Below are positions 893 through 15,053 of a DNA stretch of 64,000 nucleotides, piece by piece; positions within the stretch are counted from its first letter, which is position 1; each line of letters starts with the position of its first letter. Location of the stretch: NCBI GenBank assembly GCA_040357565.1, contig JBDODJ010000018.1; one strand, 5' to 3'. Below the pieces are notes generated by a model that did not search any database, had not been told where the DNA came from, and saw only the letters and a list, made by a program, of their open reading frames with translations. The translations under genes and the position numbers were made by a program. The stretch comes from Cercozoa sp. M6MM (lineage: Eukaryota; Protista; Endomyxa: Ascetosporea).

Positions 893-2869
893 CTACAGCA
901 TCTGCAGCTCTCGTCGTTTGCGCCACCGCTCTGCGCGTCTACTCATGACGGGAATGTGTCAGAACCGCGCACGTTAAGTTAAAATAGAAATGTAACATAG
1001 ATACCGCCTGCCAGGCGTAATGTAGCCTTCGGGAGCATGTTTGGGCAGCCTTGGCAGTCCTTTCCTGTCAGCAAAGATCAATAATACTCTCATGAGATGC
1101 TCACAAAGAACGCAAGCTACCGACCCCCAGACGCCACGCCAGGTTCGGTCAGCAAGTCATCTGCGTTGGCAGATTAAGTTACTGTGGGTAAGTCCACGAA
1201 TGCGTATCGAAATAAATTGTACCTGGATCAACCTCCGTTGGCTGATCGAATATTGACGGGTCCATCAATACCTAAGTGTGCATACAAAATGCATGTGAAT
1301 GCAGCCAAGTGCAGTCCAAATACTTCAATTTTGGTGTCACGCTGAGGGCCCTCTCGGTCGCGAAGTTGGTTGTCTGCCGGACGAACTGGACGAGCGGGCG
1401 TTGGGTCGACACCTCTACTCATGAAAAAAGATACAGCACCCCCCCCCATACAAAGGAGCGATGGTCGGAAAAGACCGCAGCTCGCGCAGCAATGCGTGCT
1501 GCTCGCGCAGACAGAAGTCATAGGAGCTATCGTTTCTGCAAGCAGAGCACAGGGGCATTGTGCGACTCACCGAACCTTCACAATATGAAGTTACCTGGGA
1601 GCAGCAGCTGTCGCAATAAAATTGCGCAAGTCGTTGATTCCATCTTTCGTCTTGGCTGCACATACACAAATATACACAAGCTACACGTCCGATTATGTGG
1701 TATGCGGCTATACAGCTAGTGAGAATAACGTTCGGTCGCAGGTAAATGCGGTCCTCTCGTTTGACGTCACGAAGCACCTGAACCGCGTGTTTGATGAGAG
1801 CAAAGACACACAGACAAGAGTACCTCCTGAATGTCGAGGTCAAGTTGCTGGGCGAACAGATCGCCGTCGCTGCCGTAGTCGGATTCGTTCTTTCCATACA
1901 GCGTCGGTGTCAAGAAAGTAGTGCGACAAAGCGAGAGGGTACCAAGCTGAAGTGCGATTTGTCGCACTTGGTCACCACAATTTGCACCGGCACCTTGTGC
2001 ACCAGCAACATGCGGAGGAGCTCTGCGTCGTGTTCGCCCAAACCCTGTCGCACAGCGGGAACCAAGAGACACACACAGCGCAGGACTTCACGTGGTCTCT
2101 CCTGCACACATTCACACCTAGGGCACACGAAAGTTCCACTTCCAACGTACCGTGAGCAGGTTGACCGATCGACGCAGCCACATGCCACGTTCACGCTGCG
2201 ACGCGCGTGCGTACCCGTAGCCTGTAGAGCGCAAGATATAAACACAAAGTAAAATATCGCAGAAACGATCTACCGGGCAGATCAAGCAGTGCGAAACGGC
2301 GCGATACGACAAACCAGTCGATCTTGCGCGTCTTGCCTGTGCAGGTCCAATTCCGTGTAACACATGCCCTATTGAAGCAACCCTCCGATCGGTACCAGGC
2401 TGCGATGACGTCTCGGCCATGCGCGAATTGTCCACAACAGCGTTCAATAGCGACGATTTGCCGCAGTTACTGGCACCAATGAAAGCCACTTCGCCGTAGC
2501 CCTTGCCTGAAGTACCAAGGAAACCGTTGTTCTTTCTTCTTGTAGTGTCAACAAAAACAAGAAGGAAAACACACCAAGCCCAAGCGTGTAGGCAGATGGC
2601 GCATCGATGCTGCGTCGGATCGAAGTACGTTTCTCCACCTAAAGGTTAAGAACGCCGAGCTGTTAACACATGCGCTCGCACGATGCTGGACTACCCTTTT
2701 AAGCAGTTGCAGCGGCAGTCGCTTCAGCGGCACTGCGTTTTGCGCGTCCACAAAGTGCCTACATCGACAAAATAAACTGGATGGAACACAGTCAAAGAGT
2801 GGTAAACCATGGCGACGTATTGCGGAGCAGTGTCGAGGCGCAAGATGGCATGAGTGCAATCGCGAACAT
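893..2869 (-). CDS. EngB/YihA/YsxC-family ribosome-biogenesis GTPase (GTPBP8-like), probably organellar
   Basis: Spliced motifs: G1 EVAFIGASNCGKSSLLN, G2 PGKTRKI, G3 LLDLPGYGYA, G4 VVTKCDK, G5 region SAKTKDGI. Ends approximate. Confidence 0.85.
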
Positions 2870-3178
2870 CCTATTCCTATTCATCAGTTGCGCAGAAAGG
2901 CATGGCGCACGCCTTATCAGTCTCCAGCGCGCTGAATGCATATTTGCGATCTGTTCTAACGATACTTTGCCTCTAATCACGCGCGATCGACGGCGCCGGC
3001 AGCTCTGAGCCGGACGTCAGGTCCATTTCGTTTCATCTGGAGCCGGTTGAACTAAAGAGCTGTCTACCTTGTCGATTGTCTTGTCTGCATGTCTGACGGT
3101 GTGCTCAGGGCAAATTTGTGTGTTTCAAGTGAGCGCAGTGTGTCGATGTGTCAATAGAGTTTGACAAATAAACGAAAC

Positions 3179-6073
3179 ATGCCAGGCAAAGGCAAAAGCA
3201 AGGCTATTCGGTCACATTTGGTCGCTGCAGGCGGTGAAGACGATGTGGAATTGCATTCCTATGGCGGCGGAAAGGTATTTTAACACACACGTCCATGTTT
3301 ACTGAGTGTTTCTGGGTGTGAGCAGCAGCCGTCAGTGCTGGCGCCGAGTGCAGGAGGCGGGCGAGGCAAGCGTCTGATCGGAGCCAAGGCACGCGGCACA
3401 GGTGGCAGCAGCACCGAGGAGCAGGAGTCGCGCGACAGCGATGACTATACAGGCGAGCGCTCGTTGCAGGGCGATATGGACCTGCCGAGCGATCACTTCG
3501 ACGACGGTTTCTCCAGCGAGAGCGACGGCGGCACCGACGCTGACACCGACGCGGACACTGACGGTGACAGCGACACGAGCGACGAGGAGGACACCGTCGC
3601 CAACTCGGCCGACGCGCAGTCGCGGCGACTCGTGTGCTGTCCGCGCACGGTGGCCATGCTGCCGTCCGCGGTGCCACCACCGTCGCTCCTCAGTCTCGCC
3701 GACGGTGCGGCCACTGCCGGCGCCGATGATCCGCAATGTCGGCGTCACCGTCTCGTACCCGCCGTTCCTGTCGACGCCAGTGGCTCGCTCCGGCGCTACC
3801 GCCGTCTGCGTCGACTCGGTAGGCCCATCTCCCCTATTCCGATTCCGATGCCCCGATCTTTAAACCCATACACCATACCCATATCCCGTACCCCACACTT
3901 CATACCTCTGATACCCCATGTGCCCAGGTGAAGGCACGTACGGCACGGTGTTTCTCGCCAAAGACCTGTGGACGCGCAAGAAGGTACCACTGACCACGTG
4001 CGTGCGTGTGACCCATGTGATTGCTTGTGACCCGTGTCAACAGGTGGCACTCAAACTCATTCGACAGATCGCCGAGCACGAGGGGTAGATGGGTTCTGGG
4101 GTGTGGGGTGGGGGGGGGGGGTAAAATGGGGAGTAAAATGTCTGTCTGGGTGGGGGGGGGGTGGGGGTGCGGGTGTGTGTGTGTGGGGGGGGGGGGTAAA
4201 ATGGAGTAAAATGTGCAGCTTCCCGGTGACGACGATGCGCGAGTTGCGACTGCTGCGACAACTGCGGCATGAGAACGTCGTCACACTGCGCGACGTGCTG
4301 ACGGTGCCGTCGCACGAGGTAACTGACTGAGTGACCACGACTGAGTGACCACTGAGGGTGACCGCTGACTGAGTGAGCACACGTGCCCAGTTGGACGACG
4401 AGCTGCGCGAGATGGTGCGCGCTTCGACGCCGGACGAATGGCACGGCGAGCCCGTCACCTTCCTCGTCTTTGACTACTACGACTCCGACCTCGGTAACCC
4501 CCTCCATACTCTCTTATTCCTCTTACCCTTACCCTTTTAACCTCCTCCCCATTACCCTTATCCCACCAGGTGACTTGGTGGACGGCATGGCGGCCGTGTC
4601 GCCGTCGGCGCACGCCACGCGCAGTTTCGGCGAGATTCCGCCGCCGCTCGACCGTCGACTGTACGCACTCACTCTGTCACCCACTGTCTGATTGATCCGT
4701 GATCGCATGTGACATCGTCAGTGACCCGGGTACACGTGTGTGTGTATGTGTGTGTGTGTGTGCAGTAGCGAAGGCGAGGTCAAGTGTCTCATGCGACAGC
4801 TGTTGGACGGCGTGGCCTACATGCACAAACACTTCATCGTCCACCGCGACCTCAAGCTTAGGTATGGGGTGGTTAAGGGGTAGAGGGGTAGGGGGTAATG
4901 ATGGTGTTTGTAGCAACCTACTGTTCCGACATGGACACGTGGCCATTGCCGACTTTGGTACTGCCTTACTTAGTCAATTTGGTCAGTTTGTGTCACGTGT
5001 CATGTGCGTAGGTCTTTCGCGTCTGTTCAGTTTTCCTTTGGCGCAGTATACGCCGCGTGTCGTCACTCTGTGGTAGATCTACCTCCTCCCTTTACCACCC
5101 CCCCCCCCCCCATTTCCCATTTCCCCATTTCCCCATCCCCATTTCCCCATTCCCTCATTTCCTCATTCCCCCATGCCCCCTCTTGCCTCACCTGGCAACA
5201 GGTATCGTGCGCCGGAACTGCTGCTGGGCGAGCCGCGCTACCACACCGCAGTGGTAGCCTGTTCTTTACCGCTGTACCCCTGTACCCCCTGTACCCCCTG
5301 TACCTCTTCCCCATACAGGACATGTGGTCGGTCGGCTGCATCATGGCCGAGTTTCTCCTCGGCGTGCCTCTTATGCCTGGTGACTTTAACTCATCCCTAC
5401 CCCTCCCCACCCCACCCTTTTACCCCCTCTGCTACTATGCATAGGATCGACCGAACTGGAACAACTGGCGCTCATCTATCGACTCGTCGGAAGGGCGGAT
5501 GTACTCATCATTACCCCCCCCCCCCTCTCCTCCCTTTTACTTCTCGTGGCACAGGCACGTGTGTGGCCACAATTCGCCGAGTACCGTTTCACTGGCGTGG
5601 TACCAAATGACTGACCATGCGACCACGTGAGTGACCACGTAGGTGGTGACCACTGTGTCCACTTGTGCAGGCCGAGTCACCGCGCTGCGTGCTGGAGCAG
5701 GCGCAGCGTGAGTTCCAACAGCAGCAACAACAAGAGAACGACGACGGTGACTATCACGGTGACGGTGACCGTTGTGATTACAGTGACCTCAGTGACCACC
5801 CAGATAATCGTGCACGTGGTGGTGGTGGCAAGTCCGTCCAGGTGCTGCGCATCTTGCGGCATGACGACGAGGATGTAGCTTCATCCCACTCTGCCTCCTT
5901 ACCCCCCCGCCATAGGACCTACCCCCCTTCATGACAGGAAAGAGCGGTGGGCGACCGGTTGGACCGAGTATTCGCGCACTGCAGCAGCTCATGTCGCGAC
6001 CTGCTGCGGCAGCTGCTGCGCTTCGACCCGGCGCAACGCATCACGTACTTGTCTTTGTATCTTATACATATAC

Positions 6074-10680: not shown

Positions 10681-13600
10681 ATGAATGCATTCATCGTTGA
10701 CGCTGGCGCAAGATGTTCTCGTGTGACATTTTTGTTGTCGAATGAGCCTGTGTGGCACAAGCGCATACCATCTTACAAGTACGCTCGATCTTTTCCGTGG
10801 CTTGTGTCGTTTTGTAGGATATAATGTGCATTTTGACTTAGAATTGCGGTGAGAGTCCCGCCTGTCCGGCGTGCCAGTCACTCTCTCAAGCACCGGTGTG
10901 GTCGATTCAATGCGCTCTGTCCTTCGGTTACATTGTTACATTAAACGATGCACAGATACACAACGCGCCTACAGAGTGAAGCAGACTGCGAGAAGGTAGC
11001 AGAGACAGGAGCCAGGGACCAGGACGGCCCAAGTGCAGCGAGCGAGAGCTTGAGCTTGGGGAAACCCGTGTCGCTGTGCAATGACTTGCTGCACTCGGTG
11101 TTCTCGTTCGCCTGCAGCGACGTACGTGATGCGGCTCGCTTGGCCTCTGTTAGTTTGCACTGTCTTGTTGCCGTTCTTGCCTCTGGTTTACCATTATGTT
11201 ACCACCTCAGGTGTGCAAGCCATGGAACCGCGCACTCCGCTCGCACCAGGTCTTGTGGAAACACCTCGTGATGCAACAGTGGCCACACACACAGGTAGAT
11301 TGAGCTGCTTCAATATACTCCGGCTGACCATCCCAAGTGTGTGTTGTCCAGGAGAAGAAGGATGTCGATTGGTTCTCGCTATTCGCGGTGCGTGCCATGG
11401 TGAGTAATTGGGCCTACAGTCATGCACATGTCTGTCGTACCATCCATGACATGGAAATTTAGGCTGGTTCGCATGCGACCGTTTCAATCGAGAACTGCGA
11501 CTTTGGGATGCTCACACGGCAGTCCAGCAGCAGTGGGGTACATTTGGTTCTTTCTCCAGACTGGGTATGAGTTTAACACGCACATATCTGCAGGAGTGGC
11601 GCGATCACGCGACATTTCGTTTCCAGTGTCCTCTCCGCGTGGACGGTCCTCTTATGCGACGCACTGACAAGGGTAGAAACTGGGTCAACGCAGACACCGG
11701 GATGATGTGGAAAGTGACCACGTGTGTGTGCAGTCGACGTGGACCATTGTCTCGTGTGTCAGCGTGATGTGCACATCGTCGATGCTGTGCCTGATTTGCT
11801 GCGTGTCGTGGATTCGTACTCTTTTAATCTTGCCCGACGGTATATGACTGTGTGTGCGCGCATTGCTTGTTATATTGCAGCGGCGAGTGCGTGCGTTTCG
11901 CAGCGGATGAGAAAGGAAAGGTGTTGCAACTAAGTGTAAATGTTTGGGGATGCACCCTCTGGGAGCATGAATATTCTGCGCAGATTGTTGAATACAGAAA
12001 GGGTGCCGGCGAGCTGCGCTTGATGGCTGGTCTAATGATGTAGCATTTCCTTTGATGTCCCCCTTATTTTGTTCACTGCCTCTTTTCACACAGGCAAAAC
12101 ACACGTCTGTTTGGCGAGCAAGCACTTGCAAAACAGTTCGGGCTGCACTCGCCCAAGTGGCCTCTCCTCTTTGGCAACAAGTTTGCCGACGCTGACATGT
12201 GGGGCTACCTTGTGATGATGCCATTCAACGCGTGTGCCTTTCATCTACAAGATCATGCGTTATGAGGAGGTGTGTGTGTGTGTGTGTATATGGACACGCG
12301 CTTGTGCGTGTAGACGGAGTCCGAGATGAGAATCTGCTGTTTGAAGAGAGCCAGCACAATGTATTCTTGACAATTCGCAAGGTCCGTCAAACTCTATTTG
12401 ATCTGACCTGTGTGTGTCTGCTGGACGACGTGCTGGACGTGTGTTTTCACCAAGACCATACCATGCCGTTTGTATGCAGACTCCGACTCGCCAGGAGGCA
12501 ACCAACATGTGCGAGTTGTTCTTTGACTTCGAGGTATAAGACACCTGAGACTTCAAACGAGGGCGCTTGTGATGCGATTTTGCTGCGCACAGGCGCCGTC
12601 GATTTCGTTGCTGCACGAAGCAGCCTGTGTGCGATCATTGTATGAGTCTGAAAAAAGCAAAGATGCCGACGAAACCGACGTGCAGACTGTGGTGCTGTCG
12701 ATGTCAGCCTCGCACACGACCGCTACCCTGCTAGTCGACACCAACATCGACACTGACACTGACACTGATAACTCGAGTGTGTACGTCACTCATATCACCC
12801 CTGACTGCAAGGGAATCTGCGTGTCGGGCGATGTCGTTGGCGATGACATCTGCCAGTGGTTGCAGCGGCGTGCTTCTTTAGTCAAGAGTAACTCTTTGGT
12901 CCTTGTACCTCTTAAACCTATATCGCTACCCTTTGTCTACCTGCAGTGCCCAAAAGACGCAACGTAAGTGAGGGTGACATCAGCAAACCCGCACTACCGG
13001 CACAAGTTATTCTCTCGGACGAGCGGCATCGCTCAGGTTTTGGCATTGTTGCACACAAGGTACTTCACTCAAACTTTTCTTGTCGCTGTTCATCTCGACG
13101 TGCGTATGTGAAGCTGGTGCACACATGTGCGTCGCGCGACGAGTTCGACCGCGTGATGGAACAAACTAACACCAATCTCCGTGCTGACACCATGCTGTGT
13201 GCAGAGCTGCCTGTGTTTGAGAATTTCAACGGTATCTTTTCTGTGTGCAATTGCTTGGGTTTATGAGCACGAACGTCTGTCGCTCTGTCTGCACAGACCT
13301 GTTTGAAGAAGGTGGCACCTTTAGCGTCTCGCTGAAGGAGGCAGCGTTCGCTGGTGAGTGCCGTTTCCAGCGACTGCTGGCATGTTCCACTGTTCCGGAG
13401 CTGCTGGAGTCGCTGGTATAGATCTTGTTTGCTGCCTTCTGGGTTTTCTTGACTTATAGTACAATGTGCATGTCCTTATCTCAATGAACTCAGCTGCAAG
13501 AGGCACGTAACCGTGGTGCGTCCGTGTCGACCAAGCTGTGCGTACTGGTGGAAGGTGCCTACGCCAGCGATGGTTTCTGCGAGCGACTCCAGCACGAACT

Positions 13601-13871
13601 GCAACAGCTCCTACCCGAAGGTACATCTGCCTCTGTTGCCCGTACTTCTGTGAGTCCTCCCTCATGTGCCACTACGCCAGTTCATCACTGGAGTGTGCAC
13701 AACATGGGCGTCGACGCCGTGCACCAGGGTGCCGTGCAGCTCGCCAGTGCATCGCCAGAGCGGCAGCGACGCCACGTGCTTGTGACGGTGCGTAGCAGCA
13801 CCGGCGAACAGGCAGGACAGTCGCTCGACGACGCTGTATGCGCCTTGACGCATGCGAAACCCCGTCATTAA
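10681..13871 (+). CDS. Divergent actin-related protein with an F-box and Cys-rich domain inserted in subdomain 2
   Basis: Actin-like blocks in collinear order: AFIVDAGARCSRVTF..P...IPS; LFGEQALAKQFGLHSPKWPLLFG; ESQHNVFLT; RQEATNMCELFFDFEAPSISL; VLVEGAYASDGFCERLQHEL; AVHQGAVQLAS. F-box: LCNDLLHSVFSF...AARLASVCKPWN. All junctions are GT-AG and keep frame. Confidence 0.8.
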
Positions 13872-15053
13872 TATTGATTCGATACTGACTGGACGTCGGC
13901 GTAAACCGCGCCGTCTTTAAGTACTCCGCTGCAGGACATTAGGTTGTTGTCCGGTCGGTTGCATGTTGACGTCCGCGCCGGTCGACAGACTTTTCGATAC
14001 GAACCCCTGACGTCTAAACGATAGAACTAAATAGGTAGCCGGGGTTTGGATGGCCCCACCCGAAGCGAGTGGTGGATTACGGCCATGCTCTTGTGACCCA
14101 CCCCCACGAGACTGACTCAATCCCACGTGTTAGCTGGAGAATTCACCCTTAAAATACATATACCACAATCTACTTATCTATGGTGCTGTACTCCGTCATT
14201 GAGTATGTCGCGGTTTCGTGTGAGGCTCACCTTCGCTAAGATTGGATGCTGTCTCAGTCTCTGCTTCGACCCACCGATGCTACCAGCGAGTACGGATTGC
14301 GTCGCATTGGGCCAGCGAAGGAGACGATCTGGGCAACTAGTGACAAAACACAGTGTTTCATTACGCTTCATGTGCGTTTTACAATGACTGTATCTGTACC
14401 ATCTGCAGCTCGGGCTGACGCGGGTGGAACTGTCACCGGCTTCCCCATCAAAGCGTCGAGGTAGCGTTTTGGCACCGTGCACGTGACACTTTGGCGAGCG
14501 TTTTTTCGATGCCGTCACATGGGGAACCGTTTACCCAGTTCACCGAGAAGCTAGCCATTGCGGCCCTAGCAATTTAATTTTGTCATATCGCCAAGACGCG
14601 CATTTGGAGTGCTCGCTCTTCAAGGCGAAAATCTGAGGTGTATAGCGAAAATAAATTCGAAACACCCACGACCCGTTCCCGGCACCGTGCGGCCGAAACC
14701 CGAGCCGTTTCATTTTACTGCAAGAGCACGAGAACTGAACTAAACTGGCTGAATCCAGCTGAGGGAATTTACGCTCACGGTGGAGCCGGTATGCCCAAAC
14801 CAGGATTGCACTTAACTAGTACAGTACTCTAGATGTGCGAGTATCGTACCGTGAATTAGCGTCGTACCGTACTGAACGCAGATTACTGTAATTCAAACTG
14901 CGCTGGTAACGCCTGCAGCTACAGTAATGATCACTTTTGGGTAGTAGCCACAGCCGTCGCGGGCGGCGGAGCCGGCTTGACGTCACGGCTGCACAGAAAC
15001 AGGTTATTCCGGGTAATGCCAGATTGTATACAGTGACAAGGAGTGCGTCAAAT

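Follow-up and report, generated by a model that had tools for sequence, protein, structure and literature searches.

Whether the F-box of an actin-like protein lies in front of its actin fold or inside it is the question raised by a gene at positions 10681-13871 (+) of the window, a 64,000-nucleotide stretch of contig JBDODJ010000018.1 from Cercozoa sp. M6MM. A preliminary description of the locus, made from the DNA letters alone, had placed an F-box module within the DNase-I-binding loop (D-loop) of an actin fold and had proposed that the product is an adaptor of a Skp1-cullin-F-box (SCF) ubiquitin ligase, whose actin-like body would bring in actin-binding or chromatin proteins as substrates. 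We find that the gene product (P0001) is, taken as a whole, probably best explained as an actin-related protein (ARP) with a split actin fold, carrying an F-box insert and serving as an SCF substrate receptor. The architecture is well supported at the level of the gene and moderately at the level of the fold.

The deposited protein, mapped onto the window, gives a coding region of 19 exons and 677 residues, interrupted by 18 introns of 54-98 nt. All 19 exons preserve the reading frame, and the introns are canonical (GT-AG) and of the size usual for the M6MM genome. The entry (NCBI MES1908344.1, locus tag MHM6MM_001298) is labeled 'hypothetical protein' and forms a singleton cluster; a query with the last exon against 1.84 billion protein representatives returned one true match, the protein itself (100% identical), the remainder being repeat noise. 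A later description of strain M6MM names it Lemnamoeba sinaloensis and places this marine amoeba in Apofilosa, Rhizaria (PMC13746701); its gene models come from funannotate, with transcript reads used both for training and for updating (PMC11069148). The introns traced in the preliminary description (10779-10841, 10896-10955, and 12040-12093) are all identical to introns of the deposited model, and so are the two joins drawn from them: exon 1 is spliced in frame to the exons of the linker and the F-box, and the last Cys-rich exon is spliced in frame to the exon in which the actin-like sequence restarts. The statement that the gene is invisible among the open reading frames does not hold for the annotation, where the protein was already present. 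An independent, hand-traced model of 17 in-frame exons with GT-AG introns agrees with the deposited junctions everywhere except in the Cys-rich module and the last exon. The two models differ at three places within the module and in the last exon, and there the lengths of the paralogous proteins favor the deposited version.

The C-terminal part of the protein is related to the actin family. Exon 11 (12094-12233, residues 270-316) resumes the actin fold at about actin residue 52 and comprises the helix of subdomain 2 and the return to subdomain 1; exons 12-19 (12314-13871, residues 317-677) hold the remaining actin-like body with subdomains 1, 3, and 4, as assigned from Pfam, the PDB profile, and the ESM Atlas. 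The Pfam Actin family (PF00022) matches residues 322-406 with profile positions 86-161 (17.7 bits at a cut-off of 27, E 1.4e-3). In two paralogues from the same genome, described below, the score is 19.6 bits for P0005 and 27.0 bits, exactly at the cut-off (E 2.2e-6), for P0006. A profile built from the three paralogous proteins gave 103 matches against the PDB at E≤10, and all 60 rows listed are actins or MreB. The best match among those listed (4efh_A, E 0.0024) is colinear over actin residues 80-324, and other listed matches begin at actin residue 37 and cover residues 37-154. The body is also colinear throughout with the exons of M6MM's own actins and ARPs, and both these alignments and the PDB profile alignment show the later blocks in the order in which actin has them, as had been proposed. 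In the ESM Atlas, Actin accounts for 27 of the 30 clusters nearest to residues 262-677 (best score 0.94), and the Atlas model of the body alone can be superposed on the actin model over 326 residues (template modeling (TM) score 0.74).

The alignments show that none of the three nucleotide-binding motifs is intact. In phosphate-1, the Asp, the Gly, and the basic residue are kept and Ser-Gly is lost; phosphate-2 has lost both Gly residues and contains an insert of Asp/Thr repeats; in the adenosine loop, Gly-Gly is changed to Glu-Gly. Judged by sequence and model, the body would be a very divergent ARP, and no ARP class is assigned to it.

The sequence between exon 1 and exon 11 begins with a poorly conserved linker (residues 33-92, exon 2 and the start of exon 3, 10842-11079, including the intron 10896-10955), followed by the F-box-like domain (residues 93-136, 11080-11273, split by the intron 11149-11210). 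The latter passes the gathering cut-off of Pfam F-box-like PF12937 (28.3 bits at a cut-off of 24.3, E 1.5e-6), and the sole match of the single protein sequence in the PDB is the F-box of Skp2 (1fs1_A). When the exons, which are too short for such a search, were compared with Pfam one at a time, just two weak matches were obtained: exon 4 with positions 28-46 of the F-box-like profile, and the last exon with positions 330-365 of the Actin profile. Within the F-box, neither the hydrophobic core positions nor the Trp residues vary among the three paralogous proteins.

Two Skp1-like genes and a cullin gene are present in the M6MM genome, with Skp1 on contig C1594 and the cullin on contig C94. A complex predicted for residues 80-160 of P0001 and the C-terminal exon of the organism's own Skp1 reached an interface score (ipSAE, derived from the predicted aligned errors) of 0.59, with 0.01 for the best control, and was rated as 'weak support'; contact agreement between runs was at least 82%, and the predicted local distance difference test (pLDDT) of the partner was at least 80. 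In the calibration of this score, 51 of 78 solved complexes came up to the mark, as did 2 of 108 mismatched pairs, and values of 0.60 or below were obtained for only 5 of the 78 solved complexes versus all 4 passing mismatches.

The F-box is followed by a Cys/His-rich module (residues 144-269, 11352-12039) encoded by six short exons (11352-11399, 11463-11537, 11594-11672, 11734-11815, 11881-11920, and 11984-12039). It has no family match in Pfam or NCBIfam. It has Cys and His columns that are invariant across the three paralogues, and it probably binds zinc. The second half of the module recurs at two further loci of the genome, which score 31.4 bits (contig C325) and 24.0 bits (contig C2) against the family profile. 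At the first of them (about 2130-3260 within C325:7000-13500), the gene has an F-box of 30.3 bits followed by the same Cys-rich half-domain, and the gene at the second (about 2340-3560 within C2:86000-93000) has the same order. The signature of the half-domain is C-x2-C, followed by a conserved Val-His/Tyr and by G-[DE]-C-V-x-F. Downstream of the F-box/Cys-rich genes, neither locus showed an actin-like body. The pairing of F-box and Cys-rich half-domain in genes of this kind fits an origin of the insert from a pre-existing F-box/Cys-rich unit.

The domain order does not depend on one gene model. A search restricted to the insert (residues 85-269) identified two paralogues in the same organism, the partial P0005 on contig C762 and P0006 on contig C5, which are 46% and 41% identical to P0001 over the insert, respectively, and about 33% identical overall. 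In both, a single exon without interruption, whose ATG directly follows a stop codon, carries the hairpin, the linker, and the first half of the F-box, and one exon likewise holds both the final part of the Cys-rich module and the point at which the actin-like sequence resumes. As both junctions are intra-exonic there, the domain order, which is conserved in the two paralogues, needs no splicing assumption, and the nested architecture of F-box and Cys-rich module at the D-loop position gains further backing. The linker of the paralogues is of low complexity and rich in Ser and Asp. Between the two closest copies, the ratio of nonsynonymous to synonymous substitution rates (dN/dS) is 0.40 over 282 codons. 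P0006 was deposited with its start at a downstream ATG; the open frame extends 43 codons upstream (1033-1160 within C5:234000-239000), and these codons encode the hairpin and start at an ATG directly preceded by a stop codon. The 5' end of the deposited P0006 model is thus probably incomplete.

Whether the actin fold is really split depends on exon 1 (10681-10778, residues 1-32), which was assigned as a candidate N-terminal β-hairpin from the exon map, its conservation in the paralogues, and the ESM Atlas model. Residues 4-14 (10690-10722) comprise three hydrophobic residues followed by D-x-G-A-x3-R, which resembles the phosphate-1 motif of actin and the ASKHA proteins. The motif is kept at the N-terminus of P0001, P0005, and P0006, at the positions of the actin phosphate-1 loop. 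In the 123,730 six-frame residues of the window and the two paralogue loci, the pattern [ILVFMY]x3-D-x-G-x4-[KR] is found four times, and three of these occurrences are the N-termini in question; shuffled sequences give 0.56. The fourth, in window positions 2727-2870 (-), has no Pfam match, adjoins a GTPase-like open frame at 2118-2489 (-), and is taken to be a chance match. Inclusion of the N-terminus in the comparison of the Atlas model with the actin model gains 37 aligned residues relative to the body alone, so that for the whole protein the alignment starts at residue 1 and covers 363 of the actin model's 374 residues (TM 0.82). The approximately 11 actin residues left unaligned would fit the length of the D-loop. 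Because the body begins at about actin residue 37-52, the first strands of the fold must come from elsewhere, and the segment directly before the restart cannot supply them, as it belongs to the Cys-rich module, which is also present in genes for which no actin body was detected. We consider it very probable that the hairpin belongs to the actin fold, into which it would be expected to pack.

The resulting arrangement can be described as follows. Residues 1-32 would form the first β-hairpin of subdomain 1, the phosphate-1 loop included; residues 33-269 (approximately 240 residues), consisting of linker, F-box, and Cys/His-rich module, would be inserted in place of the D-loop; and residues 270-677 would complete the actin fold. 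The D-loop is used by actin for filament contacts and polymerization, and a domain of about 240 residues in its place should prevent such contacts. With degenerate nucleotide-binding motifs and a blocked D-loop, the protein should neither hydrolyze ATP nor polymerize. Its most likely role would be that of substrate receptor in an SCF ubiquitin ligase: the F-box would stand out from the actin fold at the pointed-end tip and dock on Skp1-cullin, and the actin-like body would offer the target-binding surface. Of the adaptor role in the preliminary description, an F-box that passes its cut-off and the presence of Skp1 and cullin genes stand, the predicted Skp1 complex is a weak point, and the role itself is plausible; Skp1 binding, SCF assembly, and the recruitment of substrates are predictions of this arrangement.

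Several observations weigh against a split-fold SCF receptor, and they are best considered together with the explanations that compete with it. Exon 1 alone has no Pfam match; of the split Actin match that had been expected to flank the F-box, only the downstream part (17.7 bits, under the Pfam cut-off) was recovered. A small hidden Markov model (HMM) of the hairpins of M6MM's own actins and ARPs did not single out exon 1 either (-0.8 bits); a control HMM of the same kind for the subdomain 2 restart also missed a region with otherwise supported homology, so the method lacks power and the negative weighs little. In the paralogues, conservation of the third strand, which follows the hairpin, is not recognizable. 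Among the structure predictions for the protein alone, the AlphaFold2 models are unusable (pLDDT 36 for the single sequence and 40 with an alignment of the body only, chosen so that the hairpin stayed unbiased), and the dehydrogenase matches that Foldseek returned for the latter are meaningless. The sole structural evidence is the ESM Atlas model (TM 0.82 to actin), a language-model prediction with a mean pLDDT of 0.55. Finally, the N-termini encoded at C325 and C2 align loosely with the hairpin (MAFFT), although the Asp and the Gly of the motif are lost, and this alignment keeps alive an explanation in which the order is that of plant ARP8, namely an F-box followed by a truncated actin-like domain. 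The N-terminal motif would then be an unrelated leader, perhaps derived from the F-box/Cys-rich family, and the body would do without its first three strands; the insignificant profile score of the hairpin and the unconserved third strand suit this order as well. We regard both this order and such a derivation of the leader as unlikely, since the match of the Atlas model to actin starts at residue 1, conservation falls exactly on the residues of the phosphate-1 loop, in a pattern that is otherwise rare, and the subdomain 1 sheet of an actin fold would be incomplete if the first hairpin were missing; the loss of the Asp and the Gly at C325 and C2 is what would be expected of a motif that decays once its partner is gone.

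Other doubts concern the function of the insert and the gene itself. The fold may be split as proposed and the F-box be degenerate, not binding Skp1, which would make the protein an ARP with a zinc-binding interaction module outside the ubiquitin ligase system. This would agree with the Cys found at the position of the usual conserved Pro, with the failure of Pfam to detect an F-box in P0005 and P0006, although they align column by column with the F-box of P0001, and with the low standing of the Skp1 prediction: an ipSAE of 0.60 or less is a weak pass under the tool's calibration, and the score may reflect memory of solved Skp1/F-box complexes. A degenerate F-box is nevertheless improbable in view of the P0001 match above the Pfam cut-off, the core hydrophobic positions and Trp residues that do not vary among the three paralogues, a complex score 0.58 higher than that of any control, and the same pairing with a Cys-rich domain in a gene whose F-box scores 30.3 bits. 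The exon joins of P0001 are read from the genomic sequence and the deposited annotation, and the insert might be a skippable cassette from which alternative splicing or alternative starts yield the nested form alongside a plain ARP and an F-box protein. Exons 2-10 add up to 711 nt between two phase-2 introns, and an in-frame ATG at 10948 could give rise to an isoform without the hairpin; but skipping is impossible in both paralogues, where the two junctions are intra-exonic, and the skipped form would have almost no subdomain 2 loop, which leaves this explanation a slight chance. The least credible explanation, to which we give hardly any weight, is an annotation artefact or a decaying pseudogene devoid of function. 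The singleton cluster, the lack of a homologue beyond the M6MM genome in the searches made, and a decayed partial copy of the 3' end on contig C1541 could be read in this way, against which stand 19 of 19 exons in frame with canonical GT-AG introns of the usual size, the same domain order at three loci with about 33% identity, and the dN/dS of the two closest copies.

The partial copy on contig C1541 (C1541:1-2144) is ~89% identical to parts of the last exons and of the 3' flank of the P0001 gene, matching the window at 13315-13449, 13652-13689, 13726-13923, and 14291-14584. The exon for the adenosine loop region is deleted in it, and it looks like a decayed partial duplicate. Within the P0001 gene, a (GT)n simple-sequence repeat is found at window 12270-12289, in intron 11. 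Simple repeats are unusually abundant in M6MM according to the genome papers. Elsewhere in the genome, a long open frame at about 6720-10000 of C25:12000-21999 resembles, by eye, a non-LTR (long terminal repeat) retrotransposon with endonuclease and reverse transcriptase; long (GT)n tracts precede it, and a 2OG-Fe(II) oxygenase gene lies upstream of it. Matches to PF13640 occur only on contigs C25 and C130, in neither case beside an F-box gene or an actin-like gene.

The closest known system is plant ARP8/SUSA2 (Arabidopsis At5g56180), in which an F-box lies N-terminal to the ACTIN domain and which binds the Skp1 homologue ASK1 (PMC7562919). Its ACTIN domain is thought to bind the substrate, and the conserved nucleotide-binding residues are dispensable for function (PMC7562919). 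As the F-box/ACTIN combination has been described as plant-only, with the F-box at the N-terminus (PMC7562919), the remark in the preliminary description that the architecture is unknown elsewhere was broadly right. The same domain order had also been meant to be sought in other protists: word-index searches with P0001 and with the three-paralogue profile returned only P0001 and no homologue outside the M6MM genome, a result that supports absence elsewhere only weakly, since the profile search missed even the known paralogues. Like ARP8/SUSA2, P0001 unites an F-box and a divergent actin fold in one polypeptide, and the clusters of the ESM Atlas nearest to it by whole-protein features are plant proteins with F-box and Actin (score 0.87, to be used as a lead only). 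The two differ in that the F-box of ARP8 precedes a complete actin domain, whereas that of P0001 is nested after the first hairpin and is followed by a Cys/His-rich module, which is absent from the description of ARP8. A sequence link to ARP8 was not established, and an origin independent of the plant protein is likely. The genes at C325 and C2 are related to P0001 from the other side: they share the F-box followed by the same Cys-rich half-domain but have no detected actin-like body, and their N-termini are without the Asp and the Gly of the hairpin.

The pairing of an F-box and an actin fold in nested topology appears, from the sequences compared, to be new and so far confined to one amoeba. 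Its presence in Rhizaria, with a topology different from that of plants, suggests that the actin fold has been recruited at least twice as the target-binder of a ubiquitin ligase. More tentatively, a rhizarian amoeba may have evolved, independently of plants, a small family of SCF receptors with the F-box nested in the D-loop, in which the barbed-end and side surfaces of a non-polymerizing actin mimic would capture actin-binding proteins for ubiquitination. If true, there would be a direct link between actin regulation and protein turnover in a cell that has eleven actin genes. The protein would also offer a ready-made, non-polymerizing actin scaffold with which the binding partners of an 'actin mimic' could be explored.

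A broader comparison can be made with the nuclear ARPs Arp4, Arp5, and Arp8 of the chromatin remodelers, which have a divergent, non-polymerizing actin fold with lineage-specific insertions in surface loops. P0001 resembles them in combining a divergent actin fold with a loop insertion. None of their insertions is known to be an autonomous signaling domain such as an F-box, and P0001 would be a clear natural example of such a domain nested in the loop by which actin makes its filament contacts.

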